From assembly GCA_964035545.1 (NCBI GenBank), contig OZ037769.1, forward strand, positions 1,984,001 through 2,048,000: 64,000 bases of DNA, given 5' to 3'. Both the position numbers and the translations under genes were made by a program. Below, piece by piece: positions 21,965 through 64,000 of this stretch. This stretch comes from Bugula neritina (lineage: Eukaryota; Animalia; Bryozoa). Within the stretch, counting starts at the first letter, position 1. Every line of letters begins with the position of its first letter. The notes beneath the pieces are model-generated. The model was not told where the DNA came from, did not search any database, and saw nothing but the letters and a program-made list of their open reading frames with translations.

Positions 21965-34936
<12,972 letters not shown>

Positions 34937-36409: not shown

Positions 36410-39400
36410 CTATTTGACCTCACTGCTCAAACAATCTTGTGCCGTAAACAGCGAATAGGAAGTCGTTGAGCTTTGTTGCCGCGGTAACGGTTTTGGCTTA
36501 TCTGTTGTATTCGAAGTAGGCTCTGCTATACTTTGGTACTGACCAGATGCTAGTTGCTCTGTCGTAGGTATTGCATATATGTGTTCATTTCCCTTACTAG
36601 AGTCTGCAGTTAGAGAATTATCTGATGCACTCACACCGTTACTTTCACTGCTGGTCTTATCGCTATGCTTGGCACTTGTTAGAATGGTACTTAAACTTAA
36701 ACTGCTGTGCCCAGTGAATGCAAGATTCGTCTGCTCAACTTCTAAAACACTTCCAGGGCCCATGAGACGCTGGCTTGTAAGGAATTCACTCTTTTGTCTG
36801 AGGAAAGAAGTTTGATGAAGCTGTGCCGTTGGCGCTGGGTGTTGAGATGAGTTTTGCATCGCCGTTCTCGTAGGATAAATACTTTCTAAAATGTTATCAG
36901 GCGTTAAATTACAATACAGATGATGCTTTGATATTTGTTAAAAATAACTAAAGCAACATATATACTGATTATTAATTTACCTGGTTTTTCATACACTCCA
37001 CTGTGTGTATCAGAAAGAGTTGTGCTCTCCCTGGGCGAAGACTTATCTGAAAAAAATGTTTAAAAAACTGATAATATTTTAAACGCAATAAAAATTCAGA
37101 TTTTTGCCAATTACAGTAAATAAAACATTTGAAAGCAAAACAACTCAAAAACTCAAATTAAATAATATAGTTATGTTATGTAGTTATTGTCATGTGTTTG
37201 TAGACTATTATACCTGATGAGGAAAAAGGAACTTTTATGAATTTTTTAATTACTATGCTATTGACAAAAACCGAGGAAGGAAAAAATCAATATAATTAGA
37301 AATACAAAACTGTGGAACTAAACAAGAAATGCTTTACCTTTTTTGTCAGATTTCTTGAAATGATACACAAAAATTCCTGCCACTAAAATAACAAGGATTA
37401 CTCCAAGAACGATAGCGATTATTGTAGGAGTCTTCGTGGTTAAAGGTTCTGGCTCTTCATTTTTTGTTGTTGAACAGCGAGCTTGGCAATGTCCATGACA
37501 ATGAGTTGCATTTATTCCTTTCTCAACAGGGTCGTATGTATCGTATTGTTTCTTCTTGTAAAATACGGGTGGGTTCTTGTTTTCTAGAATATCGGCAGTG
37601 TCAAATTCATACGCCAAGACGTAGGTGAAATTTTGAGTTCCTTCCCTTCTTTGATGAGAAAATACTTGATACCCTGATTGCCCGTCAAAGTTATCATCAA
37701 ACGGCCAAATCATATCATCTGTTTGCTTTTGAGCTGCCGAGTCAGATATCGGTATGCTGACGTTACCAATAAATCTTTTTAGTTCTTGTGAAGTGGCCAG
37801 GGTCCTAGCATATAGAGTTGCACAGGTTTTGTAGAGTTTGTCTGGGCATGAATTAATGGCGTAATTAAGAAAACCATAGCCAAAGGCATAAATAGATTTG
37901 ATAGTGTACAAGGCGTAAATCTCAATGTTGAATGCTTCTTTGAATGGAGATGTTCCTTTACAAACTTTTCCCACATAACTAGAGTCAAAAGATCCTCGCA
38001 GCTTGCAGTGTTTTTCATTTTGGTACATTTGAGCAAACCATGGGTTACTGGTTGTAGGATTTGGCCTCAGTGATAACAAATACTCTTTAAATCCATCAGT
38101 CTACAAATCAATTTGACAAAACTCGGTGTTGTAAAATTATTTTGCAACAAAGTACATGATGACTTATAGCTTTTTACCGAACTTTTAACCTATTCTACAC
38201 ATATATAGGCTACTACAAAACTAGTTTTATTTTACATTGCTTAAATCTTATGTTTGTGAGTTTTTTACTGTTCAAAGGATTTAATAACTACTGCCTAACA
38301 TAATTAAACATCCGACTTGGGTTTTGGTGTATAGAAATTAGCTGGAAAACTCGATATAATAATTGTTAGTTACATACCTCAAAATTGGGAGTTATCTTAA
38401 ATGTCAAGGAGCCTCTGGTCAGGTGACCGTATTGTTGAAGTAAGGGTAGCCTGTCTTCCCACACTTCTGCCATCAAGAAAATGTTTCCACTCTCCTGCCA
38501 CCAGTTGCTGTGATCCGTATTACTAATTATATGGTCCAAGAAATTTTTTATTGCCTATAAAATTTATAAATATAGAATGCTAGTAGCATGATTACTATAA
38601 GTATTATGAGCAGTAGTACTAGTAGTATGAGTAGTACGGTGCATGAGTAGTATTAGTTATAGTATGAGTAGTATTAGTAGTACTATAGTAGTATGAGTAG
38701 TCCTATGAGTATGAGTGGTACTAGTAGCATGAGTAGTACTAGTAGTATTAATAGTATTAGTAGTACTGTGAGTAGTACTAGTTGTATGAGTAGTACTAGT
38801 AGTGTGAGTACTATGATGAGTAGTATAAAAAGTACGATAGTAGTATAGGCAGTACTATGAGTAGGTACTGCAATGCTTTTCACATTATTCAGTGAAAAAA
38901 AATCATGAGTGGCACTTGTATAAAACTAAAACTTTTGTGAAATGTCCTCCATCAATTTATGTCAGATTTTCATGAGTTCACATAATAATATGTTAAATAA
39001 AAAAAGATTTAAAAATAGTAATTAGTAACAGCGCTAATTGGTTAAACCAATAAAATGTTTCGTTTCAGTTACATAATTCATAATTGAAAAAGTTACGAAT
39101 TCTGCGATATATTTTGATTTACCTTTTCTTCTCCAATGTAGATAATGACTTGGCTATTATCATTGTGCTTCTTCAAACTGGAAATTATGTTTTCATATGT
39201 TGACGGATATTCCTCCAATCGATAATTGAGCTCGAACTCTTCCAACAGGCAGTAGTCGGACTGGTTGAGCTTCATTTTCATCAGCTGCAACAATAATATA
39301 TGAAATGCAATACTGATATATATAATCTTTTCAAAGGATAGTCTTGGAATAGTTTGAGTTATTGAAATGAAAAGACTCAATAACTCTGATGAGGAAAATA

Positions 39401-42400
39401 TTGAAATTAAATTATATATGAACTTTTCGAAATTAAATAAGTTAGCCCCACATAGCGCAATTAATAATAAAATTTTGTCCCTTTAAATCATAAAATGTAT
39501 ATTATATTGTTGACGCTATAAGGTATCCTACTTTATATGGAGTCAGTGAATTTAAACTCGCATAATTTAGAAATAAAATAGCTAGGTTAAGGAAACTATT
39601 TAGTCAAACATTTTTTGATTGAGTTTGCCTTTATCTAAATATTGAGTTGATAAATCAAGTTGCCTATATATGTATAAGATAATTTTATATTATATTACAT
39701 TTCATTATTATATTATATTAAATTATACTTAAATTATATTATTTCATAATATAATATTGCATTACATGTTGTTAAGTTATATCACTTAGTCTTGAAAGAA
39801 TCAAAGACCATATAGACCTTGTAAACTTCAACCCATCAAAACATAAAGCAACAGCTAAATTGATCTTTCTCACTGTATAATATTATATAGTCCAATCGCT
39901 TCCTATAAAATCAATTAGTTGTAATCTGAAAGAAACTCAAGCATATCCTTTGAAGTCCCACATGTTATTCAATGTTTTTAAAAACAAATATTATAGTGTT
40001 ATACTTTTATCCAGTTTCTGAGTATGAATATATAAGCATGCCTGCATTACTAACATTATATTTAAAAATGACTGGTTAGAATACTATAATCCACAAACCT
40101 CTGCCCCACTTTTACCATAAAGAGAGTTTGTGCTCAAAACGACAGCTGAATTGATAGCGTTGGCAGCATTCTGGTTTAAATCTTCCAGCACTTTGATGAG
40201 GTTGTTGGTTACTCTGGTAGCTGTGGGGTGAGTCCTGAGGAAGTGGGTGTGAATAGACTTGTCATCTAACTTCCAAGTAGAAGCCCCATATGCAACTTGT
40301 ATTAGGTTTGCTGGAATCATTAATGCTTGCTCCTACAAAATGAGTATATATGTATTCTAATAACTACCATATATTCTGTTTGTTTGTGTGTATGTGTTTG
40401 TGCATGTGTATGTGTTTGTGTGTGCAGGCGTACGTGCGAGTGTGGCGTACAAGAATCTATTCTACAGTACTCTTTCTAAATAATGTGCATACCGTGGTTG
40501 AAATATGACTGCTGTAGTCCCCTATCAGACCAACAATTTTGGATCTGTCCAGGCAATGCTCTTCATTACAGTATTCTGTTGTAAACTTTAAAACAAGTTC
40601 AGAATGTTAAATTTTTAATAAAGTTATATATAAGACAGCATACCGTAACAGATATGTGACTACTGTAATCTCCAATCAGTCCAATGATCTTTGACCGATC
40701 TAGACATTGCTCTTTGTTACAGTATTCTGTTGTACCATTCAGCACATCCGTGAGCAACTTCTGGGTAAGAGCTGTGTTGAAGCAGGTGTCCAGAATTAGC
40801 AAGCCAAATGTGAAGTTATCCTCCCTGAAAAGCTCGTTCAACCTTTCTCTAGCAAACAGAGCTGCTTCGGCTCTAAGAGAGGTCTCATTGTTGAAAGCTT
40901 CGCAACTCCACAAGTCTGGGTATTTGTTGAAACTAAAAACAACAGTAACAGTTACACAGAGCCGCTACATATAAGTAAGTAGTACATTTTGTAAACAAGG
41001 TTTTTGTTACTCATGTGCACAGTTGCTTATAAAACAGTGGCCGAGTGAGAATTTTTAATAGATTTTAAAAGCAAGTTTGATAATATAATTTTATAGAGTT
41101 ACTGGTTATAAATTTAATTATTCAAATAATTTTCTCTTCACGCTTGAAACAACCTCAAACCCAAATGTGTAAATGAAGTTCTGTGCAACTTTGATATAAA
41201 TAGTATTTTCATCAATATAACTTTTAGTTTGATTTTAATCATTAAAAAATATTTAAAATTTAATTTAAATTAAATGCAAAATACTGTGAAGGCAGCTCAT
41301 GACTGTAAGAAAAACTTTAAACTCAAGTACCAGAAATACTCTAAATGTAGAGATTGGTCAGCCTACAAGCGTTAGTCACACACTCAGACCTACCTGTCGT
41401 GTATCGGCATCGTAACAACAAGGATAAAGTCACCGTGCACGTAAGTAAAATTCTGGGGTTTTATCTGCTCTTTACATTTTTTTCTGCAGGCTTCATCGGT
41501 GCACCAGAACTGATTTGAGCCTTCTCTGCTATCAAAGTTCCATCCATCATCCACTGTAAACTCAGCTATCTAAAAGTTAACAAATAAAACCACTAATGAC
41601 TATAAGAATATTACTGTAGCCTAAATACTAAGTAAAAACCACACTGTTTCATCAATTAGAGTTAAATGCTTCCATAATGAGATTTGAAAAATGACTTACA
41701 ATCTCATTATTTGTAATTTGGTGATACGCTGGAGCTGACGTATCATTTATTTGTAGGGACTGGTCAGAGAATTTCAACCGTCTGCTGACATTCTGGTAGT
41801 GAGAGTCTGTCAAACTGTATGGGCTGTAGTCAAGCTCGATCTCTTGCAGTTCTTGATTTACTAGAGATGGCAGCTTTGCAACCCATGAGCTGTCACAAAG
41901 ATCAAACTGTTTAGAACAGTTTCGGTTTATTAGATTTTGAGCAGATGTGGCCAGGAGCTGTATGGCAATTGGCATTGCATCAGGGTGGTGGTGCTGTATA
42001 ATGTGAACAGAGTTTTTCTGTAGAGAAGAGTATTTGACAGGCTTTGACTCTGGAAGATGAGGAGAGACAATCCATTCTAGCGAATCAGATCTGTCATGAG
42101 TGAGGGTAGCTGTAAAAGGAAATAAAATGCTGCCCTGTGAGCAAAAATAGTGATAAAGCAGCCATGATAATTGCAAGACCAGCAAAATTTAGAAGAAATA
42201 GATATTATAATTTGTGCACGTGCGTGTATGGGTGGTTTAAATTAAACGCTGCAATTACATTTATAAATTGAGCCGTTTTACTTAATTTACAGTACGCATA
42301 GGAAATCTCCAGTTTTTAGCTATTTTTCACAACTTAGCTGCTAATGAACATTGCTTTTGCCCAAAATTAGTAAAATATCAATAAATACATCTAAATAGTT

Positions 42401-45400
42401 AAGGTTCTTTTTAATTTTGCTTGATTTCCCATGTTTTTTCCTATTTATTTAGCTTATTTTGATTTCGGACCATTACGAAAAAATCTGTAACGGTCCACAA
42501 TCAAAATTAGCTAAATAAATGAGAAAAAAACAGGGGAAATAAAAAAAATTAAAAAGAACCTTAACTACTTAGGTGTATTTATTGATATTTTACTATTTTT
42601 GGGCAAAAAGCAATGTTCATTAGCAGCTAGATTGTGAAAAAAGCTAAAAACTGAAGATTTCCAGTGTGTACTAAATTACATGAAATGACCCAATTACTTT
42701 GCTTCTGTTGAAAGACAAAAATATAATTTTTGTCATCAACCCTGAACAGTAGAGTGTTTAACTCACCCCCACTCTGCAATCCAATAACAATAACAGCTTT
42801 TGGTTTGGCGTCATTCGAGACGCGGCTAGCGATGTCAGCAGCAGCGGAGGTGTCGGAAAACTCGAAATATTCATCAACACAAACAAGATTTGCTTTCAGC
42901 TCATCTTCAAGAAGTGCTTTCAGTTCATGACTAACTGGGTCTGAGCCATAAGCAACCGTAGTGTAGTCCCAGTTTAGTTTCACAGCCAGCTCTGCTATAG
43001 CCTGTAATATTTTCGTATAAGAGTTGATAACAAAAACATGTGAATTAGGCGTGATATGCTCAATCAACTTGAAAGCTGTTAAATACGGTTTAAAATAGAA
43101 TTGTAACGTAAAATCACAATTTCTGCTAACTCTTTTGTCACCTATGCTATCCCATTTTTTTACAACCATTTTGAATTTTTCTTTTTTATTTCAACAAACT
43201 TAATTAGAAATTGTCTTCTTTTTGAGCTTCAACAACATATTTAGAAATCCTACAATTATGTTTATAGAGACTCATCATTTAAGATAATTTGTCGTTATTG
43301 TGATAAAATATAATATCTATTTGAAGCAAAAACACTTTAATAGTAATTGCAATTATATACTATTAATTTTTTTACTTCAAATAATATATAGTAATAAACT
43401 GGAGTCATGATAAAACACACATTAAGCTCACCTTAGCCCGAAATATCAGGGAGTCGCTGGTATAGAACACATTTTCTGCTGACGCATCATTAGCTAACGT
43501 TTCTCCTAGTGTTATTAGTGGAATATCTGTTTCACCGAGCACATCTTGCAAATTCAAGTGGAAAGGGGCAATGACGCCTAAAACAAAAATAACTTGTGAG
43601 AAAGGAATATAATATTGCAAGTCATGTGACCAGGTAGGTGTTTCCTTGTTGATAGAGAGTCTAATTTATATGCAAGTAAATTGATACAAATTATTAAACC
43701 AAAGTAGAAGTTGATGGTTTTGCACTCTCTGAACCTTACAACATGAGTCAGAGCAGTTCTAAAAATTCAAGCAATAAAACGCTATAGGTGTTAGTACACT
43801 TTTTTAGCTAATATGGAACATCAGAAATTTCATGTACAAACTTGTAATAGCTTTTTAGTATCATATTTATTTTGCTTGTACCGGAAGAGTGTGCAGTTCC
43901 CTAATAGAATATTATCCATGCTTCTGGGGTGTTAACTTATTCAAACCCAAAATGAAGAATTTGAACTTTGTAAAACATGCAAAGCTTTCTTATCATTCAA
44001 CATCTTACTGTATAAGTATAGAGTAAAGAAAGCTGATAAAATAATAGAATTACATCAATTACATAAGATATTATAAAAACATCTGCCCCCATCAGGAATT
44101 GAATCACAGACCTTCAGCTTGTAAGCTAGTACATACTAACCATTACACTCTAAGGGATCTTAGAAAATTTCAACGCTACATCTATATATAATAATATAGT
44201 TATAAGAGATATTTTAGCGATGGTTATTGCCAGTAAGTACCAGCAGTTCAAATGTCATTAAATACTTACACTCTATATTTCTCAAATATATATGTAACTA
44301 AGTTGTTTGGGCATTCCTTCAAGAATAAGTCAATTTATAACTTATTTGTGCATAGTTTGAGCCTTTCATGTAGTTAAAATATATGTAAAGCTTGACGCAG
44401 GTAGCAGTCTTTTAACATAGTGAGTGAATCAATTCACCTACCAATCAGAGAACTGGTACTATTCTCAGCTGTCGTAAGTTGACACTGATCAGCAGGTGGT
44501 AGTTGCTGTAAAATCCTTGCTCCAACTTGTACCCTTGTGACCTGGTTAGGATGGCAGAGTGGTAACACTTGTAAACCTATATATATAGAGTAATCGGTAA
44601 AGTGTATGCATTGCGAAACCTTGTGTACGTTAATCATACATTCTTTTAAACTATAATTGCCTGGTACTTCCTAATACACAATAACAAACGTTATTATTAT
44701 TTTTCAAAATACATTATTAGTTTGAATATTATCATCTTTGAAAAGCAACCATTATTTTAGTTGTAAATTTTTCAAACTTATATATTATATATTGCATTTC
44801 AGTTTATCATATTTCAGCAAATTTTTTCAAAAGATTTTTACTAGAGGGAAACATTTTAATGCAGGCATCTTAATTTTATTATAGATATGCAATAAGAGCA
44901 AAATTGTGTATAGCAATAACGCTATACTTCTCAATAAGTATTATTATAGAGGCAGCAGCTTTGTATGCTAGCTGGGAAAACAACGAAATTAAAGCTCAGA
45001 CTTAAACTGACATTTTCTGATTTGCTTGAAAACTTCGAAGCAAGCGTAAGTTTACTATACTAGGAAATAAATTTGCTGCTCAGTTAAGCATTTTGTGGGG
45101 AAAACTATTTAGGTTTATATTGAACGAACTAAATAACATCAGTCCATAAAAATGTCAGATTTAAACTTATGTATGATAGAATCTCAAAACATTAATTTTG
45201 TCTAAACGCCATCATGACAGTACAAGGAAGTTTTTTATGAGAGGGACAGGTGGTTATTTATAAAGTAAAATAGCATAGACATTTATCTACATTATAACAA
45301 CATAATAATATCATTTAACTATATTATGAATTGTTGCTAGGGATAAATCAGTTTAGCTCAAAGTACGTAAAGGAAATCATAAACAGGGTTCCAAATACTT

Positions 45401-48400
45401 CTTCTATTTATAATTTTCTAATTTAGCTTCAGCAAATATATTGTGCAAAAGTTTGTCTTATAATTATACAATATGAAGCTGTAGCAGGTATAAATACTTA
45501 CCAAAACTGAGACTAGAGTTCATGTTGATGGTTTGAAGAATTTCCTGGGCTGTATCAACTGATGCCGAGTTGGCAGCAACACTTCCTGATTTACAATACT
45601 CATCCTCGTTGCTGACGTAAATGATGTGGGCTTGAGAAGCTGAAATATAACCAAATCAAATCAAAGTATATACTAGTTGGTGTTTTTTGAAATAATAATA
45701 AAAAGTGGATGAAAATATTGCTTGCATGGGTGTGTAGGTGGTGCATTATTGTGTGTCCTCGTTTTAGCTGTTATTTGCTTATAAAACTAGGTAAGTTTAC
45801 ACTCTTATACCCTGTGTTTCCATGACAACCATTACGAATGCCCTTAGGATTAATTATGGTTTGGGGAGGTTAGCATAAACTTATAGTTGCGGTTTCATCC
45901 TAAATGTAACTATTTCCATTAGTGGAATGAAAAAATCATTCGGATAATGATAATGGAAATGTAGTGATAGATAGACAGATTTTCCTAGCTATTTCATCAA
46001 ACAGTTTGCATAACAGATTAGGTACATATACATATGCATACATGTATAATATACATTGAAGATACCTACGGCAGCTATCTACGGGTATAAATATCATGAA
46101 TGTACTTACAATGAATTTAAATAGTGGCTGTACCCTACAATCTACGAGAACAATTAATATAGATATATAGTGAATGTATCTAAGTAAGTGCATATAGATA
46201 ACTTTATCACAAACACAATTATCTGCTGGAATTTTATAACAATTAAGTATTTAATATGCACAATGCGAGGTGATATATAGAAGATAATACAAATATAATA
46301 ATATAGTGGAAGTGCTTCACTAAGTATTATATTCCCTAATAGGGTATAATGCTAATGATAGATATATGCCTATCGGGTATCATGCATGATTAGTAAAATC
46401 CTTTCAGCTAGTAACTTTTATGATTAGATCAAGATTCAAATAACTCAAGGAATTTTAAAACTTGAATAATAATTGCGTAAACCCTTACAAATAAACCTAT
46501 GGCCTTCAAGCTTATAGTTTTAGCAAATGATGTTCTTTTACCAGAGGCTTGCGATAAATGTATACTATTCAGAAAAGATCCATAAATAAAACTAATTGAA
46601 GGCAACATTGTAATTGAAATTCTCAAAAAGTTGAGGCAAAAGTGCTTGCAGACGGCTATTATAAAAATGAGCAAGGTATTGCAAAACAATGCAGTATTGC
46701 GTAATTCTGTTGTGACAAGATTTTCATGCTGCCAAAAGCCTTTCCTTTCCCTGACAGAGATCGGAAGACACTATAAAATCTGACATGATATGCTCAGCCT
46801 TAAACAACAGTATGCTACATGTATTGGTTTTATTTTAGTCTATTTTGTCACATGTAATTAGGAAAATTATAAAATTATTATAACAACTAATTGTAAATGC
46901 AGCAAAAACAACACCACACACTATATATACATGTATCTAGTCATCAGTGTTATGAAAACACATCAGCAATTAATGGAAAGTTTGCAGTTTCGATCCAACA
47001 GCAGCAGCAGCAGCAAAATTCAAGAGCACAACATAGAAAGAAATTATTGGGCTTAATACATATTATTTTATATAAACCTAATTCAACCACTAGCATTCCA
47101 CTTTTTCAATATATATTCATACTTGATATCAATAGATCAAACCTTTAAATCAATATATCTATAATTTATATCAATAAATCAGTGCTTTATATCAATAGAC
47201 CTATACTTTTGTATCAATAGATGAAGATGTATGCAAATGTAGCACTTCATAGTAGTGCTTGAAGTGTGCGCTGTAAAAAAATCATGAATTATTTGACGGC
47301 ATAAACTTAATATATGGCTTCTTCTCACACTCTTTTGGTTTTTTATCCTAATCTTTTGTTTTGTTCCATTTATGCTGAACGCGTTAATACACGCTAAATC
47401 GTCTTATATAAAATGATTTTTTAATTAATTGTTCTAGAAAGCAAACTTTTCCATATTTGAAATGTAAAACTTATATAACCCTGTCTACTTATATTCTTTA
47501 GCCAGTGTGCCATATTTTAATTTGTTTATACCAATTAAACTAGTTTATAACAAAAATAAGTTATGTAATAAATGTATTTATATCAAAGATAAATTAAATT
47601 GAGGTGTAGCCCATATGAAGGTATGCTAGAAATGCAGAACTAGCTAAATTGTTTATAATTCATATCGCTGAGAGTTTTAGTTTAGATTAATAGTTTTATA
47701 CTGTTTTACCCAACGCAATGCTCAATTTTAAAGCCATTGAAATAGTTTCAAGTTGCCATGGAATAGCATTGAGATACTTTAAATTATGCAATACACATTA
47801 TTTTTCAATAATCAATAATCAATAAAATTTACAGCAGCTCAACTGTAATCATTGTAAAAAAAGAAACTTTCTTTTAACTGATACACAATATTTGATTTTT
47901 AAAAATTAATAAAATCTTAAAATGTTACTAGGCTATATTTTCAACGTCAGAATGTTTAAGAAGTAAAGTTTAAAATGATTTAAATATTTAGTGAATCTAG
48001 ACGAAGAAAAATGCAATATAGTTACTTAATATATATGGTAACTTGAACGGTCAAAGTCAAAGTAGAAAGTCAAAACTATAGCTACGATAGGATTTGGAAC
48101 AACTTTTTGAAGTAAACTTCCTTGCTTTAATTATTCAGGATTTGCTATAGCTAGCTGCGTTAGCAGGCAAACACTTATGACAGTTCAATCCACGTAAACA
48201 CTTTTTTTCCTTAACAATTGGGGATAAACTAAAATTAATTTTATGCTTAGCTACCAGCTATTTGCCTATAACAACAACTTGATTGTATAGTTACTCTTTA
48301 CTAGATAACTATGAGCACCAATAGCTTTGTTGTAGCGCTATAAAAAGCCGCTCATAGTCTCAGATAAAATGTAAACACAAAGTCCTAGCAAAACAATACA

Positions 48401-50298
48401 AACATTCGAGAACTTCTACTATAGTGCCTTATACACTTGGATTTAAACAGTTGGGTTACTGTCGAGCACCTGAAGCTATTTAGATTCGTCGAAAAATTAG
48501 TGCTCACCGAATTCCCACATTCCTCATGGCTTTGCTTATCATTAGCAATTATGACTGAGGTTGACCTAATTTCAGAAGCTGACAAAAAATCTGCTGAAAG
48601 TTCACTTTTACAGTCCAGGAAGAGCTGATTGTCACGTTTTAACACACTGCCGTATAGATGTGAGAATTTCATAAATTAACTTACAAGTTGTATATTTTTT
48701 AGCTTCACCAGGTTTACACCATGCAGAGCTATAATGAAACTAAAAAAATATCTGGTGATGGAATTGTACTTTAGACCTGCATTAGACAAACTATTTACAT
48801 CCAATAACAACTTCATATCCTTGTTTGTTATTCCATTTGAATACAGTATAAATAGAAAATTGTAGCAAGTGACACCCAAAGTGATTCATATCATAGTAGC
48901 GCAAGGTTTTAAATTTCCATACCATGCAGTTACAACATATAGCAGATATAACGGATATATAGTATGTCTGTTAATCATTCCCTCCTACAAAAAGAAACCT
49001 ATTGGCACATCCACAAGCAGAATTCATTAGTGACAGCAGTGAATAAATAATATCTGTAATAGTATAATGCAATCAATGTAGCAACTTAGACTATATATAG
49101 TATAGCAACACTACAAGCAAGATCAATTATTTTGTCTACCAATGGCGCTATCCATCATATAATACACTCAGAATGCTTACCAAAGCCCACAATAGAGCAA
49201 ACAACATTGCTAGCCTTTTCAGAGTCTAAAAATGTTATTTATTACGAATGTCCAAGTTTTGATCTTTAAAGCAGCCTAGCTATTATTATAAACTTAACGT
49301 TATAAATAGTTGAAGCGATGCATTAGCTAATCTCCTAATATGTGTCTTGAATTCTAGAAATTCAGGGCTCATCACGTGTCATGGGAATCTAATAAAAGCC
49401 GCTAGTTTGGTACTTAAGTTTTTACTATAAAACTAGAACATTGAAAGTGATTCAGACTTTGGAAATAGATAAACATGAATCACTAAAGTTGAAATCTGAG
49501 CTATAAGTTATTGCTAGACTCAATGATTATAGACTGCTAGCTTTTACTTTGAGGTAGGTGCAGTAATGGAGAAATTGAGAAAAGCCTGTGTTCTAGATTT
49601 GAAATGTAGCATAAGAAGTTATGTTCTCACGAGAATTTTAACCCACGCCCCAAACCAAAATTTAACTATAAAATTAAAGAACTTAGGCTTTCTCAATTTC
49701 TCCACTACTGCTCCTAAATGTTTACTTTTTGCTGCATAAAACTACATAAAATCTATAGAAAGATGTTAAAAAATTCAGAGGAAAAGCAAATTTTTATCAA
49801 ATGCATGATCTTGTAGACATATACCACTAAACTTATAATAATAGAACACACTCCTTACACCTAAATACTAATTGCAACTCCATCTGTTAAAAAACTTATT
49901 TCGGAGAAGTACAGGTTATTGCAACCAATTCTTATAACGAAAAATACTATTTCTTTTTCTAATTTTTACAACTTAGTTTTTCAAGTATAAGAAATATGTG
50001 TGGGATAAATCTCCAAACATCGATTGACACTACTTGGAAAAGCCACTAATGATGTTAAAGATTCAAAGAAACTGACGACTGTCGCAATTTGTAAAAGCAA
50101 TCAGGCTATTAGTCATAAATTAAGATAATGTGATATACTAAAGTATACTATAGAATATTTAGTTGTTTCAGCACAGATGTTCAACTCTACAGACTACATA
50201 CCTGGTGTAAGAGATCTTAAGCCACATGATTGGCTTTCAGAGAGCTTACAGAGTATAGCAAGAGAGTAGAGATATCCAAAACCAAGCAATGCCTTCAT
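36410..50298 (-). CDS. Paralog A: single-pass type I membrane receptor with two tandem mGluR-type Venus flytrap (ANF-receptor) domains and a Tyr/Pro-motif cytoplasmic tail
   Basis: Exons (approx.): 50298-50202 (signal peptide MKALLGFGYLYSLAILCKLSESQSC), 45639-45502, 44576-44442, 43577-43432, 43001-42698 (AIAELAVKLNWDYTTVAY), 42109-41700, 41569-41394 (GDFILVVTMPIHD), 40932-40644 (LRAEAALFA, GLLILDTC, IIGLIGDYSSHIS), 40332-40099 (QVAYGAST..LDDK..HFLRTHP, YGKSGAE), 39284-39123, ~38554-38378, 38101-37338 (NPWF; TM IIAIVLGVILVILVAGIFVY), ~37046-36981, ~36885-36410. Splice phases join in frame. Confidence 0.85.
38580..38870. repeat. Degenerate (AGT)n trinucleotide repeat
   Basis: AGTAGTACT/AGTAGTATG units; intronic in paralog A. 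Confidence 0.9.
40493..40582 (-). pseudogene. Displaced duplicate of the 3' half of a VFT2 exon of paralog A, with intact GTATGC donor
   Basis: Encodes TTEYCNEEHCLDRSKIVGLIGDYSSHISTT versus the adjacent exon's TTEYCNKEQCLDRSKIIGLIGDYSSHISVT; many synonymous differences. Confidence 0.85.
42270..42691. mobile_element. Foldback MITE, copy 2, with 4-bp TSD AATT
   Basis: AATT|GAGCCGTTTTA...TGAAATGACCC|AATT; same family as 18893-19314. Confidence 0.85.
44085..44155 (-). repeat. tRNA-derived (SINE-like) repeat, same family as 34621-34700
   Basis: Minus strand GAGTGTAATGGTTAG...CTAGCTTACAAGCTG...GATTCAATTCC; shares upstream TGTAGYGTTGA with the other copy. Confidence 0.45.
49555..49716. mobile_element. 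Small MITE (~160 bp)
   Basis: TAGGTGCAGTAATGGAGAAATTGAGAAAAGCCT ... AGGCTTTCTCAATTTCTCCACTACTGCTCCTA; a similar right end occurs at ~34500-34529. Confidence 0.75.
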
Positions 50299-51557
50299 TT
50301 TCTGCTAGTATCTGTGTATCCATATAGCTGCGTAGAAAGATAGTAGTATAGCCACTAAGTGAGAGCACACTTTCTATGTAGTACTTCCTGGTATGGCTAT
50401 GCTTGAATGAATGTTGCACAATTCAATAAGTAATCTGAGGCTTTTGATATGGTTAACAAAAATTCTAAACACGCAATCCTACTACAACCTATAAAAAATA
50501 TGTTTTCATGACTCATTGAACAAAGCTGTGAGTTGTATAAGGCTGGCGTACGGCTGGGAGTAGTAAACTGAGCATAACTTAGATTAAATCTAGTTGTATT
50601 GTGTTTCATTTATGTTCAAATGAACAACAATTTGCGTATCTATATTATTTTCACTGTAATCGTTTAGTAAAAAATTTTTGGCTTTGACTGTATCTCTTAA
50701 ATGATACGTCAAACCTATTTTATTATATTCGATAAAAGGTTGCCTAAAAGAAGAGTAAATGTTTGTGAGCTGGCAGCCACTGAATAAAAACTATTACTTA
50801 GCAAAACCGAACTGGCATTGATGGAGCTGAACTAAAATTAACGCAAAATTTCCAAGCCCAAGTTAAACAAAAGAAAATGTAATGCATTACATATAAATAT
50901 AAAAATACTATAAACACTTTTGTTAGGCACTTGCATTATTATATTATTATATCTATACATGTAGTACAATGGCTCGTTGAATTAAGTATACCAGTAGTGT
51001 TTTACCACTCTGTCTATTGTAACAGACCTGCATCTTTCTGTAAATTATGCAAATTTTAAACAGATACACATTCTACAAAATGAATAAACAAAAAAGCTAC
51101 ATTATTATAGGCATGCACCCTTGCTTAGCTCATTATAAGCATTGCAAATGCCAATATTTCTTTTACTAAAAGATTGTAACATTGACTTACTTTTTTTATA
51201 AATTTATGAATGCATTTTAAAAAATAGTTTTGCTATCAAAAGATTTATACACTTGAAAAAAAAGATAAAAGCTTTAAACATAGTTATAACAACTTTTTGG
51301 ACATAGATTGATCAACCTTGGGAGTTGCTCTTTCAAAATAATTGCAAAGTTTTTGATATAATTAATTTGTTATAACTATTGTGATACAACTTTTGAGAAC
51401 TATTAGTACAATTGTTACCATATAATTTTATATTGAGATTTGATATGATAACATTTCGATAGATTATCAATTTTGTTGGTTATGCAGAACGTAGCTTTTC
51501 TCAAATAGTAGAACACTATACAAATCCAAAGCTATCATTTGTTTTTAAAAAAAATCC

Positions 51558-54500
51558 TTAATTAGGAGTTATTGTCCTTGGCATAGGGACTGGCTGTGCA
51601 TCTTCTGAATGGCTGGGGGCTGAATGTTTTTGTATATTACGATATCCGTAACCCTGCAACCTTGAACCACCATCTTCCTTAGCTATGGGATCACGAGCTG
51701 CCTCAGACGCACTGGTAGTAGCAACTGTAGCTTGGGTAGGATTTTTATTTATTTCATTGATAGAGTTCTTGAGGCGATCGATGTAATGAGTTGGTTCTAA
51801 AGTAATTTCTGTAAAATAATGACTTGGTGCAGTTGAAGTTTCAAGATTAAAACAGGGTTGAAAATACGTAAGTGTTTGGCAAATGAATGAAGCCCTGTGA
51901 ATATTTGAAACAATCCAGCTGTAAGCAAAATATTTAATTAACAGAGCTTCAATTAATGAAATAATGAAAGATAGAAAGTGCATCTCCCTACACCAATTTC
52001 TGAAGTTATAAAGCTATTATTGCTGAGTCCTAATTCATAACAATAAAATTAAAAAAGATTTTTTTATGCTGCTATCACTACCTATAAATTATTGATTTGA
52101 TGCAGATATCAGAACCATACAAAATTTGAATTTTTCTTACAGAAAGCAACTCACCAACAACAGCCTGTCTGTCAGAATTTCTACTCCTGCTTTCGTTGTA
52201 AGGCAATGAATACGTCGCATCGTCTGTAAATTGCCGATTATTGTGGAAAAACACACATTCGGTTATTATAAATAAACTGTTTTTATGTGTGCAGTGATAA
52301 TGGCATATCCTCCATTGAAATTTGAATAATTATTACTTTTATGCAACATTTATATAGGTATATATGCTGTTCACCCTTACTATACAAATATGTATAAGGT
52401 GGCACATTTCCAACAAATCTTTATCAAAAAATAGTTTAGCAGTACCAGTTTTTATTAATTCGTAGCAGAGTTTTAGAAAATCAAAAATAGTTTTACATTA
52501 AATTTTCAAGAAACATTCTGCAGTTTAGTGAATTGAGCAGTTAATGTACATACTCATATGTGGTCAAAGAGCCAGCAACTATGTAATGACTGAGAGAACT
52601 CTAACAGGCAACAAGGTCACTTACTAGGAACATTGGACGAAGTTCCATTTGCACTGTGTACGTGACTTCTGTTGTTGGTCAAATCTTTCGGCTTGTTTTG
52701 TGACTGCCCTATTAAAAAGATAAAACAAGAAACATTACTGTATTCTCTGAAATGTTGTTTTTGACAAACATTCACTTTGATCATCAACCGATGTTGATAT
52801 TTTACAAACATATACTTATATATAAATAGGTACAGTAAAAAGTTCAGTTTTCTAAAAATTATTAGTTTTATAGCGAAATTTTTACAAGCATTGTTATTTA
52901 GAGAATCAGCTGAAGTTAAACGTAGTCTAGCTTTAATTTTGTAACAATTTGAAGGATATATAATATGCTTGAGAAATTTAAAATTTTTTTTTACTACATA
53001 CCTTTGTGTTTAATGATCAGCCAGACGACTGCAGTAAAAAGAAATAGGATGACTATCCCTAAGCAACTGGCAATAACAATAATCTGTTGGTTATCTTCTT
53101 TTGTTGGTACAGCTGTACTAGAATGATTACTTTTATCCGGACCGGGACAGAAACTCGCACAATGAAGATCACATGACCTGCTTACTAAAATGTCTTGTAT
53201 GACCTCTGAAGAACCGGAACTATCAGCTGTGTAAAATATTGGTGTGTCTGATCCATTTGGTACAGAGATGTCATTGTTGGTATCAAACTCATAAATTAGA
53301 ACATAGCGATAGTTTGAAGTGCCAGGAATCAACTGTTGGGAGAAAACTTGATAACTACTTTTTCCATCCAAATTTTCATCAAAAGGTGAGAGTCCTGCAT
53401 CCCCACCCGTCTCGGAGCTAGAATCATTTTGAGGAATTCTTACTCTCCCAATATTATACTTCAGCTCTTGTGAAGAATACAGTGTTCTATCAAGTAGCTT
53501 ACTGCAAGTTTTAACACTTTGACCTTCACATTCACGATCAGCATAATTCATGAATCCGTATACTAAAGCGTACATAGCTTTCAAGGTGTACAAGCCGTAC
53601 ATTCCAACATTAACCTTCGAGCCTTCCATGATATAAGATTCATTGCTGGGGCAAATGTTAGCTGTAGAGGAAGTGAAGGAACCTCGGACCTTGCAAGCTC
53701 TTTTTGTTTCATACACTACTGTAGTCCACATATTTGAGGCAAGGCTACTAGCTCTTATACTTAGTAAATGACTTTGAAATTTGTTTACCTGTAAAAAATG
53801 TGCAAACCACAATATTTTTTTAAAGAATGATACAATTCTTTAATTATGACCTTTCATACACTCATTGAAAAAATATTTCTGATTGTTGTTATTGAAGAAA
53901 ATTAAACCCAAGATACATTTTAGGTGGCAAAGAGGTTACTTATTTTGACTATTTACTTGAAACTCTGGGTTCACTTTGAAGGTGAGAGATCCTCTCAGAA
54001 TGTGCCCATATTTCTCTAATAGAAATGTTCTGTTCTCCCACACTTCTGTCATTATAAATATGCTGCCACTTTTCTTCCACCAGTTCTCATGTACAAACTT
54101 CATATTGTCTAAGAGATCTCTGATTGGCTGAAAAGTATAGCTGAAATTATCAGACAAGAAAAACATAATCATGTATAAAACCTTTGATAAATAGTATATT
54201 TACTTTACTGAACTTTACTCAATAATTTTTAATACTTTATGCAAAATTTTGGGTTTTACTGAGAAGTAGTTATAATGAAATGTCATAATATAAATAGTAA
54301 ATTATGTGATGCTTTTTATTTAGCACTAAGAAAATAGTTGTTTATCACTTTAATGATTAGTGTCTTACTTTTTCTTCTCCACAGTATATGACAACAAAGC
54401 TTTTTTCACCGTAAGACTGCAGAGTGGACCAAATAGAGTCATACTTGATAGTAGTTTCTTCTCCCAAATAGCTTAGTTGAAAAGACTCAATGATGCAGTA

Positions 54501-57500
54501 GTTAGACTTGTTCAAATGACTTCTTACAAGCTACAAGATGGCAAACACTGTAAGTTTTACATCTTTGGTTTGAAGTAAAGTAAACTACTGAGTTATGATA
54601 TGAAACTTTAGATCAGAAATAAAAATTTATTCGGTGCTAATCAATCAATACATTGTAGCACAGTTTTCGAACCAAGCATTAACAAACTCAGTGTTGCTAT
54701 TTGTAGCTTTAAGCCTATATGCCTAGTAGCCATAAGTTTTGCTGGGCTATATCTTTCTGCTTTACAACCAACACACTGCTTTAGCAAGACCACAAACCAA
54801 CCTCTGCCGTTGTCTCCCCATACAAAGAGTCTGTGTTCATCAACACCACAGAATTTATATCAGCTTTCCCAGCAGAGTTCAGGTTGTTTAGTAATTTTAT
54901 AAGTATTGCTGCAATTCTAGTTGCAGATGGATGAGTCCGCAGGAAGTGGGTGAACTCAGTCTTGTCGTCCAATTGCCGTGTCGCCGCACCATATGATATT
55001 TGAATAATGTTAACAGGAATCATCAGTCTCTGCTCCTGTTATTAAAGTATAAAAACTTACAAATAGGGGTCAAGCTAGTAAAATGTAATTTTTGTCAATG
55101 TTAAAATATGTTTCATGTTGGCTTCATGGCAACCAGACTAGTTAAAAATTACAAAACAGGAAAAGAAATTAAACAATGAACCTAACAACAGCGATAGAAT
55201 TTTAGTAGAGCTGTAAATGAGACAGCATACCGTAACAGATATGTGACTACTGTAATCTCCAACCAGTCCAATAATCTTTGAGCGATCTAGACAATGCTCT
55301 TTGTTACAGTATTCTGTTGTACCATTCAGCACATCTGTGAGCAACTTCTGAGTAAGAGCTGTGTTGAAACAGGTGTCTAGAATTAGCAGGCCTAAATTGA
55401 GACCTTTATCTTGAAAGAGTTGATTTAGTCGTGTCCTAGCAAATGTAGCAGCTTCAGCTCTCAGCGATGCTTCTGCGTTAAACTTCTGACAGCTCCATAA
55501 ATCAGGATATTCATTAAAACTGCAAAGTATGAAGCTGTTGTTTTTCTAGTACCAATCTTGTGTGCCTTGTGCAAGACAAACCAAAATATTGCATAAGAGC
55601 AGTGTTTGCAAAAATATAATAAGAATTTGTTGAAGTTTTATGAACTGAGGTTTTCCTCAAAATAAAGTTTTTAAGATATTTAAACTTGTACTCAATTATC
55701 CTAACCTACCTGTCATGAATAGGCATAGTGACAAGTATGATAAAGTCTCCTGGCAGGTAAATGTAATCTGGTACAGGTAGTTGCTGACTACACTTTCCTC
55801 GGCAGCTCTCACTGGTACACCACATGTCTGTGTTCATCTCTGCCACGGAGTCCACCATCGACCACCCACTGGAAGGGCTGTATGTCTCCTAACAAAATTA
55901 TGTCAATTTTATTTTGAGGCGTTCTTCTTTGAATATAATTCGATCTACTAGGAATCTTCTTTATAAGTTGAAAGTAATCAATTGACTGGTCATTTTACCA
56001 TTTACCAGAAAATGTTTACAGATAGATCCATAGCATTTATAGATACAAAATGAAACACCTTCAGAACATCACCACCATAACAGATTCACAGGTCATTTTG
56101 TAAACACAATTATAGAGATGAAGACAAAAAGTTCTAAATTTCCAATTTGTATTAAAGTATACATGAAAAATCTTACACCCTGTCTTAGCTGGTAAAGTGG
56201 TATTTCTGGCTGTATTTGAAGAACATTTTTCATAAATCTGAGGCTGAAGGTTTTGTTATCATAATCTAAAGTTATGCTAATAGATTTCACTTTTTTGTTG
56301 ATCAGCTTCTGTAACTTCTCAACCTCAAGGTTAGGACAGACTGCTATTCTGCCTGAGCACTCACTATTTACCACTTCCTGTACGGAAGCAGCCAATAAGC
56401 GCACTGCTGCCAAAGTTTGGAAGACGTTAGATCCAGCAGAGCTATTCAGCTGGTACTGTTTCACAATGTGTATAGAGTCATGAGCACCAGCAAGAAACTC
56501 AAAGTCTTCTCTCTCTGGCAGTTCAGGAGAGACAATCCAGGAAAAGCCGAAGCCAGTGAGATGAGTAGGATTTACTAAAAACAAAAGATAATGCAATGAT
56601 TCCATTTCCATTATCTCCAGAATCAACAAGGTATAGAAAAAGTTCTTTTTTTTCCAATGGAAATTTTTGGTGGCATGAATAGAATTCACTAAAATATAGG
56701 TTTGCGTCTGTAAAGAATTGTTTCGAAACTGTATCTTATATATTGAATGCAAGAAAATCTCTGTCACTACTCAGTGTTTTTAGTCATGATATGTAAAAGT
56801 TCCTCAAAATACCTTGATTTCAGCCAATAGAAATTTAATAAGCAAAGTATTCTTGACAACAAAATGTATACCACTTCATTTCGTTTGAAAACATTCAGTG
56901 TTACAGGTAATTTGCTGCTAAATTGCTCAGAACCTCTATGAGAATATTATTACAACTTTATGACCCTTGTCGAACATACTCTCAATTGAGTTGTATGATT
57001 AAAACCTGACAAGGAAGCATTTAGCAGATGCTAAGCCTAAAATATTTCACGACCAAAGAGATAACGCTTGACTTGTTATTCATAAAAATGATTGATGTTG
57101 GCACTTCTCTTTTAGGTTTTTAGCTCAAATTTCAACATTGTGCCAGAATAAGATAAGAATACCTGTAGTAATTAAAAATATTGTGGTTGTTTAACTCTTA
57201 ATATGACTAAAATTTCAACAGGAAAAAATAAAGCTGCTATAAACTATTTTTAACTGAAAAAAGCTTAAAGTGGATTATTTCTAAAAGTTGATGTGTAAAA
57301 GAAAAGCAAAAACCTACATTTACTAGGTGCTGACAGAATTATAACTCCCCGAGGTTTATCCAACCCTGTCACATTACGTATGAGTTGAGAGCCAGTAGCA
57401 TCTTGGAGGAACTCAATGTAGCTGTCTACACACACCCTCTTCTCTCTGAGTTCATTTTCCAGCAGCTGTCTCAGAGCTCTACCAGAAGTTGTGGAGCTAT

Positions 57501-60145
57501 ACGCCACTGTTGTATAGTCCCAGTTCAACTTGACTGCTAACTCAGCTATTGCCTATAGTAACATGTATGGAGTTTAATTTTGCAATATTTTATTCTTAAA
57601 AAATATTAAAAGATAGCTGTTATGTAAAATAATATCTACATGTCAAAGGCGCAATACCTTTAAAGCTTTCTTTATTGCTTCTCTATTTTGATTGACTATT
57701 ATATGTTTTACTTTTTACATTACAGCCTCTATGAATAATTTGTATAATATTTTAGTCAAAAATATAGGCAATTAAAAGTAGAATCTCACTTTGGCCCTCC
57801 ACTTCAAAAGAGGGCTGGTATAATATAGGTTGTCATCATAAATAGTTGAGTCTGAAAATTCTTCAAAGCTTATGTAGGGAATTCCAGTAGATCTCAGTAC
57901 TTGGTGAATAATCAGCAAGCCAACACTATCAATCACGCCTATTAAAAAATATCATACTTTTAAAGATTTGCAGATATAATAAATAAGATGCAGATCCAAA
58001 AAATGTTTATAATTTTGCTAAGGAATTTTAAATCAAGATCAAATGATAAAATAGTTCCTAGAGTGACATTTAGTTCAGCAAACTAACTGTTATTTCATAG
58101 ATTATTAATATGGCAGAGCTATAAGCCTAGCTATAACTGAGACATATAGAAATTCAGTCAATTAAGGGTATATCATGACAGAGCAAGGAATGCATCATTT
58201 TTGAAATCACCAGATAGTTGCATGAATTTAATATAGCCTATTACTTATCAACTTAGGTATATATTTATATAATTATATAATTATACCATAATCATAAATA
58301 TTTATATAAAGCATATAGGATATCCAGGCAATATTATACTAAAATCCCAGAGTTTTAAATTCTTTGGTCAAAAAGCTCTACAGTGTAAATAAATTTTTTA
58401 GAAGAATGTTATAATTACCTAAGGCTTGAAATACATTAAGAAACTAAATGTAAGGCAATATCACATTTCTCTTAGCTACTTTCAGATCAACAAACCAATG
58501 AGTGTGCTGTTAGCATAGGACACTGTGCTTTTAACTCCTTCACATGTTTCTCTTAGCAAAACTTGATTAGAGATCTCTGCATTCACTTTAATTGCAGAAT
58601 TGGAGTCACTCCTACAGACTGAGAGGACCTGTACTCCTAACATGCAAAACCAAACAATGTAAATAAAATTCTACAGCATATAATAAAAAATTAATAAACT
58701 CAAAGTTGTTATACTATTGAATTAAAGTATGTTTAATTATTTCTAAAAGAGCATATCAATTCAATCACAAAGGGACACTTCACACATATTTCATGTTAAT
58801 ATGATTTCAATAGAATTAATTCAAATTCAATTTGCAGTTCATAGGTGCAAATTTACTTCGACCATTATTACGGTCACACAAATTGTTCAAACTCTTTTGC
58901 CTTAAGCTTAACTAATTTATCTCTGTTCATGTATAAAGTAGCTTACTCCTAAATGGCTGGTAAATGCTTACAAGCAATGAAACATAAAGGATATCCAGTT
59001 AGCAAACACTAAACCCACTCACCAAAATTCAATGATTGTTTGCTGTTGATACTATTCAAGGTTTCCTTGACTTTCTGTACTTTGGCAGATGCCGGCCCAT
59101 TTTGATTGGCTAAACAGTCAGCGTCTTCTCCACTAATAAATATTATGTAGAAGTCTGAATCTAAAATAGTGGTGAGGTGTTCCAATACATGTATACAGAC
59201 ATTATTTGAAGCAATATCGTAAAGTAATTGCAAGTCAAATATATTTGTATTTTGAAAACAAATTCAATATTTAAAAAACAAAATTAGATTGAGTTTTCTA
59301 ACTCTCATGATTTTCCTTCAGATGTTTACAATTTTGAAAAAAGTGAGGTAACCTTCTGCTTGTTGTTATGCCAGTATTTTACTACCTCTAAATATTATAA
59401 TGTCTAGCTAACATAGGTGCAGCAAAACAAGCAGATGTTATTATAATGCTAAAATGGAGCATTTATTAAACGCCATTTATCTATTTTTCTAGGGAAATTT
59501 TCAGACAGATATGCATATGATGCATCCCAAAGGGAACCAGAAATTAAACAGTGCAACTTTTACTAAACATTATATTTTGGTAGATGACGCAGTTGGTTAG
59601 AATATCTCTATTTTAGGCACCAGCTTCTGAATATTATTATAAAATTAGAAATTAGTTGCCTCATAACTTTTGGATTTTTGCTTAAACACACTATATTTTT
59701 AATTTAATATATGCATGACGCCAGATTATATTTTACACGCTGTAATAAAATATATCCTATTATATTACAATTATTGTAGGCTACTCTACATATTATATTA
59801 CATTGTAACTTATTATAATGATGATATATTTTAATTTTCAGTAGCTACCAGTATGCTGTAGGGTGGCATTTTTAGTCTCAGCTTACATGCTTGCCCAAAA
59901 TGTTTACAAGCATGTGAATTTTAAAATTTCTGTTTGAATGTGCAAACTCAAGAATATTGATTTTAAAAAAAAACAAAAATATGTGATAAACATGACCAAA
60001 TCAACTTTTAATCTAATGAAAACATAAAATTAATTCTTTTAGTTTTACCATGAGAGGATGACTGCTTTAAGCATGTTTGAGTGCTGACGAGGTCGGCTAT
60101 GTATAATCCTACAACAGCAAGTACAATTTGAATGAGTCTTCTCAT
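51558..60145 (-). CDS. Paralog B: single-pass receptor with two tandem Venus flytrap domains
   Basis: Exons (approx.): 60145-60049 (signal peptide MRRLIQIVLAVVGLYIADLVSTQTC), 59161-59022, 58637-58497, 57938-57790, 57553-57318, 56575-56177, 55888-55711 (GDFIILVTMPIHD), 55519-55231, 55035-54802, 54530-54369, 54128-53957, 53788-53002 (TM IIVIASCLGIVILFLFTAVVWLII), 52708-52623, 52223-52155, 51808-51558. Ectodomain intron positions and phases match paralog A. Confidence 0.85.
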
Positions 60146-62202: not shown

Positions 62203-64000
62203 CTAATTTTCCTGATCCGATACATCAACTGGCAGTTGTTGCTTCTGATTTATTTGTGCATCTTTAGAGAGATGAGGAGTTATTGTCCTTGGTGCAGGGA
62301 CTGGCTGTGCTTCTTCTGAAGTACTAGGGGCTGAATTGTTTGGTATAATATAATATCCGGAATCTAGCAACTCTGAGTCACCATCTGTGTCAGCTGTGAC
62401 ATTTGCACTGGTAGTAGCTACTGTAGCTTGAGTGGGCGTTTTATTTATTCTTTCAGGTGCCTGGTCTGTGCGATGTAATGGGTTGGGTGGCAGAGGTTTT
62501 AAAGTAATTTCTATAAAGTAATGATTTGGTGCATTTAAAGTTTCAATTGATTAAAACAGAAATGAACACACATAAATACTTAGCAAATATAAAGAATGCT
62601 CATGTAAATAATTAATACAATTTAGCTGCATGTAAGCAAAAGATTTTGTGTAGGGCCACACCACGTTTGTTTTTAAACTACGTCATCCGATTTGGATATT
62701 AAAAAAGCGGAAATGCAAACTACATAAAACTGTTTTAATTCAGCTCGCTAGAAGTTAAAATGTAAATTAAAATAAAAAAATGTGCTCGCTAAATATTACA
62801 TGGTAATAAGCCAATTCGATCAAACTGTGTCGCACAAGTGCATATGTCGCACTTCTCACTCAGCATGTTAGACGCTTGAAAATCCTCACGCGACGTCCAA
62901 TTTTTGGACTAAATGGGATTTCTCGCGTCGTGTGGCCCTACATTTAATGAACAAAGCTCGAGATGATGAAATAAAGAGGTAATGAAAAATAGAGGGCCTA
63001 TTTCCTTACAAATGAGAAGTTTTTATGCTGCCATCACTGCCTACAAATTTTGGACTTAATGCAAATATCAAAGCCATATACAATTTGAGTTTTTCTTGCA
63101 AAATGCAACTCACCATCAACAGCCTGTCTGCCAGAATTTCCAGTTAGCCAATCATTACTCCTCTTTCCGTTGTAAGGCAATGAATAGGTAGCTTCATCTG
63201 TGAATTTGTTGAAAAAAACAAGTTTAAGCATTTTAAAAGGCTAATTTTTATGTGCACAATAACAATAGTGTATATTAATAGTGTATATTACATGTTCACA
63301 CTTGCTATAAATCTATATATTGCTGCGCATTTCTATGAAAATTTTATTGAAGTATAAAATATAGTAATATCAAATTTTATCAATTCAAAACGTGACTTTA
63401 GAAAACTAAAAATAGATTTACAGCAAGTTCTCAAGAACTTTTTGCAACTTAGTAAATTGAACATTCACTGTATTTGTTAGTATGTTAACTAAAAGAACTG
63501 CAACAGGCAACAAAGTCACTTACTAGGAAGATTGGATGAAGTTCCACTTGCAATGTAGACGTGACTTCCTTTATTGGACAAACCTTTAGACATTTTTTGT
63601 GACTGTCCTATTAAGAAGATACAACAAAAACATTTATTGTTTTCTCTAAAATATATTAATTGTAGACAAACATTTACTTTGCTCATCAGCAGATTTTGAT
63701 ATATTTCAAAAACATATATTACTTATATATTTCAGTCAACAGCTTTTGCTTTTCTTCACAAAATTATTAGTTTTATAAGAAAAATTTTGAAACCACCATC
63801 ATTAGGAAGTTCAACTTAGATTGAAAATGTTCTTGCTCTCATTCAATAACGAGGTGAAAGGTGCATATGCTTAATATATAAGTGACTTTCTATACCTTTG
63901 TTTTTGATGACAAGCAAAATGACTGCAATGACAAGAAGTAGGATGACTGTCCCTAAGCAAATCGCAATTGCAATGGTCTGTTGGTTAGCCTTTGTTGGTA
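62203..64000 (-). CDS. Paralog C (3' part only; gene continues beyond the window): TM exon and three cytoplasmic-tail exons, closest to paralog B
   Basis: TM exon >64000-63896 (TIAIAICLGTVILLLVIAVILLVIKNK), ~63607-63523 (GQSQKMSKGLSNKGSHV), ~63197-63113 (EATYSLPYN), 62510-62203 (..QPVPAPRTITPH..DQEN*). Exons, introns and 3' flank align with paralog B. Confidence 0.82.
62649..62942. mobile_element. MITE (~290 bp) in an intron of paralog C, absent at the equivalent site of paralog B
   Basis: TGTAGGGCCACACCACG ... CGTCGTGTGGCCCTACA; paralog B has the uninterrupted GTAAGCAAAATATTTAATTAACAGAGC at ~51921. Confidence 0.8.

Follow-up and report, generated by a model that had tools for sequence, protein, structure and literature searches.

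Single-pass receptors with two stacked Venus flytrap domains in Bugula neritina: an apparently undescribed family related to class C GPCRs

Animal class C Venus flytrap (VFT) domains are thought to signal via a seven-transmembrane (7TM) domain, a kinase, a cyclase or a channel. A 64-kb stretch of the genome of the bryozoan Bugula neritina (the window) raises the question of what flytrap receptors that have none of these might be, where they came from and how they might work. On its minus strand, the window carries a tandem array of intact receptor genes, whose products combine two VFTs (VFT1 and VFT2) with a single transmembrane (TM) helix and a low-complexity tail. The results presented here suggest that these 2xVFT single-pass receptors represent a real, apparently undescribed family.

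The array comprises four head-to-tail paralogues (A to D), where the first-pass annotation had claimed at least three. D lies entirely past the window edge and C has only its last exons inside. Gene A was resolved into 14 exons (50298 -> 36410, 1167 aa) and gene B into 15 exons (60145 -> 51558, 1127 aa), both with canonical AG/GT sites, compatible phases and 0 internal stops, and all four paralogues showed identical phases and near-identical lengths across exons 1-12. The architecture and the motifs that had been described for A and B were present in these open exon chains. Exons were joined in silico only for the phase, stop and hydropathy counts; searches used single exons or database proteins, and P0171, a protein predicted from the transcript contig described below, was the stand-in for a full-length Bugula protein in domain searches and folding. 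The features of the array are the following:

36410..50298, minus strand: gene A, 14 coding exons for a signal peptide, two VFTs each followed by a Cys stub, a TM helix and a tail of ~185 aa
50202..50298, minus strand: A exon 1 (97 nt, phase 1), containing the ATG and the signal peptide; as long as the first exon of B and C, and matching the paralogue leaders best
41700..45639, minus strand: A exons 2-6 (45639-45502, 44576-44442, 43577-43432, 43001-42767, 42109-41700), VFT1, shortened and degenerate
41394..41569, minus strand: A exon 7, covering the first Cys stub and the opening strand of VFT2
38378..40932, minus strand: A exons 8-11 (40932-40644, 40332-40099, 39284-39123, 38554-38378), VFT2 with pocket residues
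40493..40585, minus strand: 93-nt tandem copy of part of A exon 8 (its 3' third), in frame, AG/GT-bounded
37338..38100, minus strand: A exon 12, with the C-terminal part of VFT2, then the second Cys stub, a Thr/Pro stalk, the only TM helix and a basic stop-transfer
37046-36981 and 36885-36410, minus strand: A exons 13-14, low-complexity tail in which YxxP occurs twice and PxPxPR once, ending in a stop at 36412-36410
51558..60145, minus strand: gene B, 15 coding exons, same architecture as A
60145-60049, 59160-56177 and 55888-53957, minus strand: B signal peptide, VFT1, and Cys stub with VFT2, respectively
53788-53002, minus strand: B TM exon
52708-52625, 52223-52155 and 51808-51558, minus strand: B tail
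62203..64000, minus strand: 3'-terminal part of gene C, with the last stretch of the TM exon (to 63896) and the tail exons at ~63607-63524, 63197-63114 and 62510-62203

The signal-peptide exon of A sits 4.6 kb upstream of exon 2; a candidate at 46608-46542 was dropped for 50298-50202, which matched the paralogue leaders better. Exons 9-14 of A were 87-97% identical to the B. neritina protein KAF6016456.1, which is mis-named GRM5. The 93-nt copy of exon 8 (40585-40493) repeats the strand with the pocket serine and may be a cassette exon or a remnant.

From its N-terminus, the protein consists of a signal peptide, VFT1 with a Cys stub, VFT2 with a second Cys stub, one TM helix and a low-complexity tail. 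Besides the signal region, hydropathy analysis gave one strong peak per protein, at residue 960 in A (KD19 3.4) and at residue 967 in B (3.0). In both proteins, basic residues follow the helix, and a low-complexity tail of 135-185 aa then runs to the stop. The tails contained no Pfam domain and no kinase motif, and no kinase-homology or cyclase domain was found before the stop. Genomic surroundings were likewise free of a signalling module: no 7tm_3 (PF00003) or NCD3G (PF07562) match was located close to any paralogue, the 7tm_3 loci all being elsewhere in the genome, and no kinase (PF07714) match lay near the genes among the matches listed, which were those of the best-scoring candidates. The single PF07562 match of the genome was on another chromosome, beside a 7tm_3. 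The region 3' of A contained nothing but unrelated open frames and, on the opposite strand, an ABC transporter gene. The proposal that these receptors have no 7TM, kinase or cyclase was therefore borne out, with one TM followed by tail and stop.

Transcript data showed that these elements can be joined in a single message. A 3618-nt intron-free contig from the public run SRR4125604 contained an uninterrupted 1141-aa frame (P0171) with both VFTs, TM, tail and stop, followed by a 3' untranslated region (3'UTR). Nucleotides 1353-3618 of this contig mapped in exon blocks, with 88-98% identity, to a further paralogue, E (C5, 5.37-5.38 Mb), where the TM exon was spliced straight to the tail exon, then stop and 3'UTR. 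In this paralogue, one message thus carries both flytraps together with the single helix and the tail. Exons 2 and 4-12 of A aligned in order to the P0171 contig; the transcript support itself comes from the paralogue and not from A, B or C.

Several lines of evidence identified both ectodomain halves as class C flytraps, as the first-pass annotation had proposed. Exon pieces matched PF01094 weakly in both halves. As regards VFT2, its sequence matched mGluR5 with an E-value of 1e-17, and exon 12 of A, which also contains the TM, matched the VFT of mGluR5/1 (mGluR5 E 1.3e-8). The VFT2 model had a predicted local distance difference test score (pLDDT) of mostly 80-97 and resembled isolated mGluR ligand-binding domains (Foldseek E 1e-26, TM-score ~0.85). 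Every top match to VFT2, both in sequence and in structure, was an mGluR, and sequence and model thus identify this domain as an mGluR-type flytrap. VFT1 was more divergent. In Bugula it is ~100 aa below the normal VFT length, its model is partly of low confidence and Pfam alone did not recognise it as a whole, although exon 5 of A matched PF01094 (E 2e-4) and exons 2 and 4-6 were collinear with P0171. The VFT1 domain of P0171 was modelled with an alignment of VFT homologues, which biases it toward the VFT fold; this model matched CaSR and mGluR5 (Foldseek E 4e-10) and VFT-family chains at VIA Z 14-15 over ~300 residues. The family profile of this domain matched mGluR3 with an E-value of 1e-91, and the mollusc and brachiopod members gave two clear PF01094 matches each. 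The earlier view of the N-terminal half as a VFT was thus upheld, and the Bugula VFT1 is a shortened, degenerate version of the domain. The Cys mini-module that had been noted after each VFT was indeed present, but it was equivalent to the cysteines that open the class C linker, that is, an N-terminal 3-Cys stub of the cysteine-rich region and not a nine-Cys domain.

In order to determine the range of the family, the genome and the databases were searched. The TM-containing exon recovered 11 loci on three chromosomes of the 216-Mb AT-rich genome and a Watersipora homologue, used as query, revealed four further loci, giving ~15 in all, compared with ~10 7tm_3 loci genome-wide. A second, intron-poor subfamily of four loci was located at C1:2.64-2.66 Mb, C2:5.80 Mb and C3:3.65 Mb; it was nearest to the Watersipora protein and its first three loci carried VFT2 and TM within one exon of >800 codons. 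A full HMMER search with a profile of the TM-exon ectodomain retrieved 233 proteins among 1.84 billion representatives. Among them, ~25 full-length homologues combined a pair of VFTs with one TM and lacked a kinase motif, and those scanned by Pfam presented two PF01094 matches and neither PF00003 nor PF07562, as had been predicted. The homologues that were looked up came from Solemya, Lingula, Batillaria, Potamilus, Bulinus, Sinanodonta, Saccostrea, Pecten, Haliotis, Nucella, Physella and Watersipora, and all of them carried the database label hypothetical or uncharacterised. In addition, the ESM Atlas held a 105-member, 1283-aa cluster with PF01094 and without 7tm_3, auto-named mGluR. These data point to an unnamed and old lophotrochozoan family (molluscs, brachiopods and bryozoans) that was expanded locally in Bugula. 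The suggestion of a lineage-expanded family therefore held for the expansion but not for its restriction to the lineage, as the family is also present in molluscs, Lingula and Watersipora. Its 2xVFT single-pass architecture was not described in the openly searchable literature, where Venus kinase receptors (VKRs), SmGBP and bacterial BvgS were the only precedents found (NPR-C, VKRs and SmGBP being the closest overall), which agrees with the initial remark that no named family has this architecture.

The same profile search brought to light class C receptors of the G-protein-coupled type (GPCRs) with five VFTs (nemertean, snails and scallop), four (acorn worm and crinoid) or three (amphioxus). 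Those with 3-5 VFTs before 7tm_3 were P0006, P0024, P0026, P0034, P0037, P0043, P0044, P0051, P0085 and P0020; examples are XP_074641006 (nemertean), XP_059178375 (snail), XP_002735016 (acorn worm) and XP_035691717 (amphioxus). One of them was a 2802-aa frame on a 9-kb contig. None of the multi-VFT GPCRs that were scanned contained NCD3G, and no description of them was found in the openly searchable literature. A tree of 59 VFT units, without a formal root and without the VFTs of VKRs, grouped the single-pass VFT2s into one clade (97/92) that included the mollusc and brachiopod members. Away from the canonical mGluRs, the single-pass VFT1s clustered (100/99) with the first VFT of those GPCRs that have four or five. 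The very long Bugula VFT1 row was omitted from this tree; in another tree it fell among the VFT1s. A recent internal duplication yielding VFT1 and VFT2 was discarded, since a forced VFT1-VFT2 grouping was rejected (p-AU 1e-4). Conversely, the topology test was compatible with both VFT2 next to the last VFT of the 5-VFT GPCRs (p 0.13) and VFT2 next to canonical mGluRs (p 0.10). An origin from a VKR that lost its kinase was also considered; no kinase-bearing protein and no VKR appeared among the long profile matches. Altogether, the phylogeny indicates that the VFTs were inherited from a multi-VFT class C lineage, whose members with 3-5 stacked VFTs appear as the nearest kin. The simplest reading would be that the 7TM was lost from a multi-VFT ancestor.

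The next question was whether the flytraps retain a ligand pocket. Positions R78, S165, T188, D208, Y236, D318 and K409 of the glutamate site are given here in rat mGluR1 numbering. The VFT2 of gene A presented equivalents of R78, S165, T188 (S), Y236, E292 and D318 (E). More generally, Bugula VFT2s kept R78, S165, Y236, E292 and, for the most part, an acidic residue at 318, with S or A at 188, while D208 was lost and a Tyr occupied the K409 position. Over 25 homologues, S165 was found in 23/25, T/S188 in 24/25, Y236 in 25/25 and an acid at 318 in 24/25, the distal glutamate contacts being variable. The alpha-amino-acid pocket of VFT2 is thus strongly conserved across the family. Since the K409 and D208 positions are changed, the ligand of VFT2 is probably not specifically glutamate. 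Most pocket residues were lost in the Bugula VFT1. The matching pocket residues of mGluR3 are listed in PMC3206071.

The cytoplasmic tails were unalignable save between close relatives, yet they shared short motifs. In the tails of 27 members, related and therefore non-independent sequences, YxxP occurred 36 times (17.9 expected) and PxxxPR 11 times (2.9 expected), neither count being reached in 1000 shuffles (0/1000 in both cases). A hydrophobic last residue was found in 17/27 tails (3.9 expected), and PDZ-type ends were present in molluscs. YxxPhi sorting motifs were not enriched (31 vs 35 expected). PxPxPR was kept in 8/10 readable Bugula tails, where it constituted the best-kept element; it fits PXXXPR, the SH3-binding motif of CIN85 (PMC2833206). 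Adaptor-based signalling or endocytosis through the tails is therefore likely.

Given the conserved pocket and the enriched tail motifs, we favour a non-catalytic dimeric type I receptor in which VFT2 would sense an amino-acid-like ligand and the tail would recruit SH2, SH3 and PDZ adaptors, with a probability of about 0.5. Like other VFT receptors, it would be at the cell surface as a dimer. The membrane-proximal VFT2 would close on a small amino-acid-like ligand, and the degenerate Bugula VFT1 may act as a spacer, a dimer contact or a protein-binding head. Closure or clustering would alter the spacing of the two TM helices, after which cytoplasmic tyrosine kinases could phosphorylate the YxxP motifs, allowing SH2 adaptors of the Crk/Nck type to bind. 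The PxPxPR motif may bind the SH3 domains of CIN85/CD2AP, leading to endocytosis and actin, and mollusc tails may bind PDZ scaffolds. Several observations weigh against this model. D208 is lost in Bugula and paralogue B does not have the hydroxyl at 188; the tail is very short in some members (17-60 aa) and the motif counts come from non-independent sequences; transcripts derive from a paralogue; and the tree behind a loss rather than a gain of the 7TM has no formal root.

Other explanations were weighed against the same data. VFTs are dimerising modules and, in the GABA-B receptor, GABA-B1 binds the ligand while GABA-B2 couples the G protein. The Bugula proteins could similarly be co-receptors that bind ligand and signal in trans via a 7TM or kinase partner, for instance a multi-VFT class C GPCR. 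That their nearest kin are 7TM receptors in the same phyla and that some tails seem too short for much signalling would suit this idea, which we nevertheless regard as unlikely, given that most members have long motif-rich tails, that the single-pass loci outnumber the 7tm_3 loci and that no partner gene is adjacent. A role in adhesion or recognition, with the VFT rod binding protein or cell-surface ligands in neural wiring, immunity or colony recognition and the pockets being vestigial, would explain the degenerate distal VFT1 and the tandem expansion in Bugula with its fast divergence, visible as long branches. There are precedents in GluD receptors, whose amino-terminal VFT binds protein ligands, and non-catalytic receptors of immunity and adhesion typically have tails of the phosphotyrosine type. 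However, the family-wide conservation of the VFT2 pocket makes such a role improbable. NPR-C, with its VFT, single TM and non-catalytic short tail, binds a peptide between protomers. A clearance or uptake receptor of this kind, internalising its ligand via CIN85/CD2AP and relaying no signal, would share the topology class of NPR-C and make use of the best-kept tail element of Bugula, but YxxPhi is not enriched and the YxxP and PDZ-type ends suggest signalling or scaffolding, so that we consider it quite unlikely. Finally, the genes might be mis-spliced or truncated mGluR genes, or pseudogenes. The public annotation names one piece GRM5 and the window genes themselves are not those with transcript support, but frames are open with conserved phases in four paralogues, a full-length intron-free contig exists, the architecture recurs in many independent genomes and the 7tm_3 loci are all elsewhere. 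An artefact or decay is thus largely refuted and very improbable.

Comparison with known systems delimits the family further: the defining features that were compared set it apart from class C GPCRs, VKRs, NPRs and the flatworm GBP. Like mGluRs, the Bugula receptors have the VFT sequence and fold, the lobe II cysteine, most alpha-amino-acid pocket residues and the first linker cysteines, whereas they differ in having two VFTs, one helix and a disordered tail, with no nine-Cys domain and no 7TM. They share stacked VFT and Cys-stub units and the lack of NCD3G (in those scanned) with multi-VFT class C GPCRs, which in contrast have 3-5 VFTs and 7tm_3. Their topology is most like that of NPR-C, whose ectodomain was matched by the VFT1 model at Z 12; NPR-C, however, has one NPR-type VFT and a short tail, in contrast to a pair of VFTs of the mGluR type and tails that are usually long and rich in motifs. 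The kinase-homology and cyclase domains of NPR-A/B are absent from the Bugula genes. BvgS and EvgS are bacterial histidine kinases with a different periplasmic binding fold class. These sensor kinases place two stacked flytraps above one TM helix (PMC4352136), a mechanical analogy only, as they are not homologous in architecture. VKRs are invertebrate receptors with one VFT, a single TM, amino-acid ligands and an insulin-receptor-like kinase (PMC3703292), a domain that the Bugula family does not have. SmGBP of Schistosoma mansoni, a 488-aa protein with a single mGluR-type VFT and no 7TM, binds glutamate (PMC3206071). Its five listed pocket residues correspond to R, S, S, Y and E in the VFT2 of gene A, but SmGBP has a single VFT and no Cys linker, C-terminal TM or tail. 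The ~500-aa profile matches examined were fragments of the 2xVFT family or of multi-VFT GPCRs.

Although the sequences of the family are public, they are unnamed or mis-named mGluR. In oysters, scallops, snails and the fouling model Bugula, they are candidates for a role as chemosensory or nutrient receptors, and they form a natural experiment in the relay of flytrap closure via a single helix; the search also uncovered class C GPCRs in which as many as five ligand-binding domains are stacked. Tentatively, and at somewhat less than even odds, these receptors could together constitute an old class C branch that has not been described, consisting of multi-VFT GPCRs in lophotrochozoans and invertebrate deuterostomes and a derived 7TM-less family that would sense amino-acid-like ligands independently of G proteins and enzymes, small-molecule binding by an mGluR-type flytrap being passed on by one helix to adaptors of the phosphotyrosine, SH3 and PDZ kinds.

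Other features were observed in the window and the assembly. The ABC transporter exons lie at ~14600-20500 on the plus strand (PF00005) and are ABCC/MRP-like by motif. A ~420-nt near-perfect palindromic element resembling a miniature inverted-repeat transposable element (fold z -26) occupies 42269-42692, in intron 5 of A, and a second copy, ~80% identical, is found at 18892-19315, in the ABC transporter region. On the minus strand, 22801-23670 encodes a 289-aa single-exon frame with a weak beta-propeller match, and short coiled-coil-like frames lie upstream of it (30230-32581), perhaps as parts of a TRIM/NHL-like gene. Microsatellites at 16427-17154 and 27457-28460 (4-mer x142; dinucleotide x396) give rise to spurious long open reading frames. 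Elsewhere in the genome, a PF01094 cluster without 7tm_3 nearby was located at C9:4.80-4.83 Mb. In small contigs (e.g. C33, C66, C105 and C176), numerous kinase matches lacked introns and had TAA/TAG as their only internal stops, probably representing ciliate contamination or a symbiont in the assembly.

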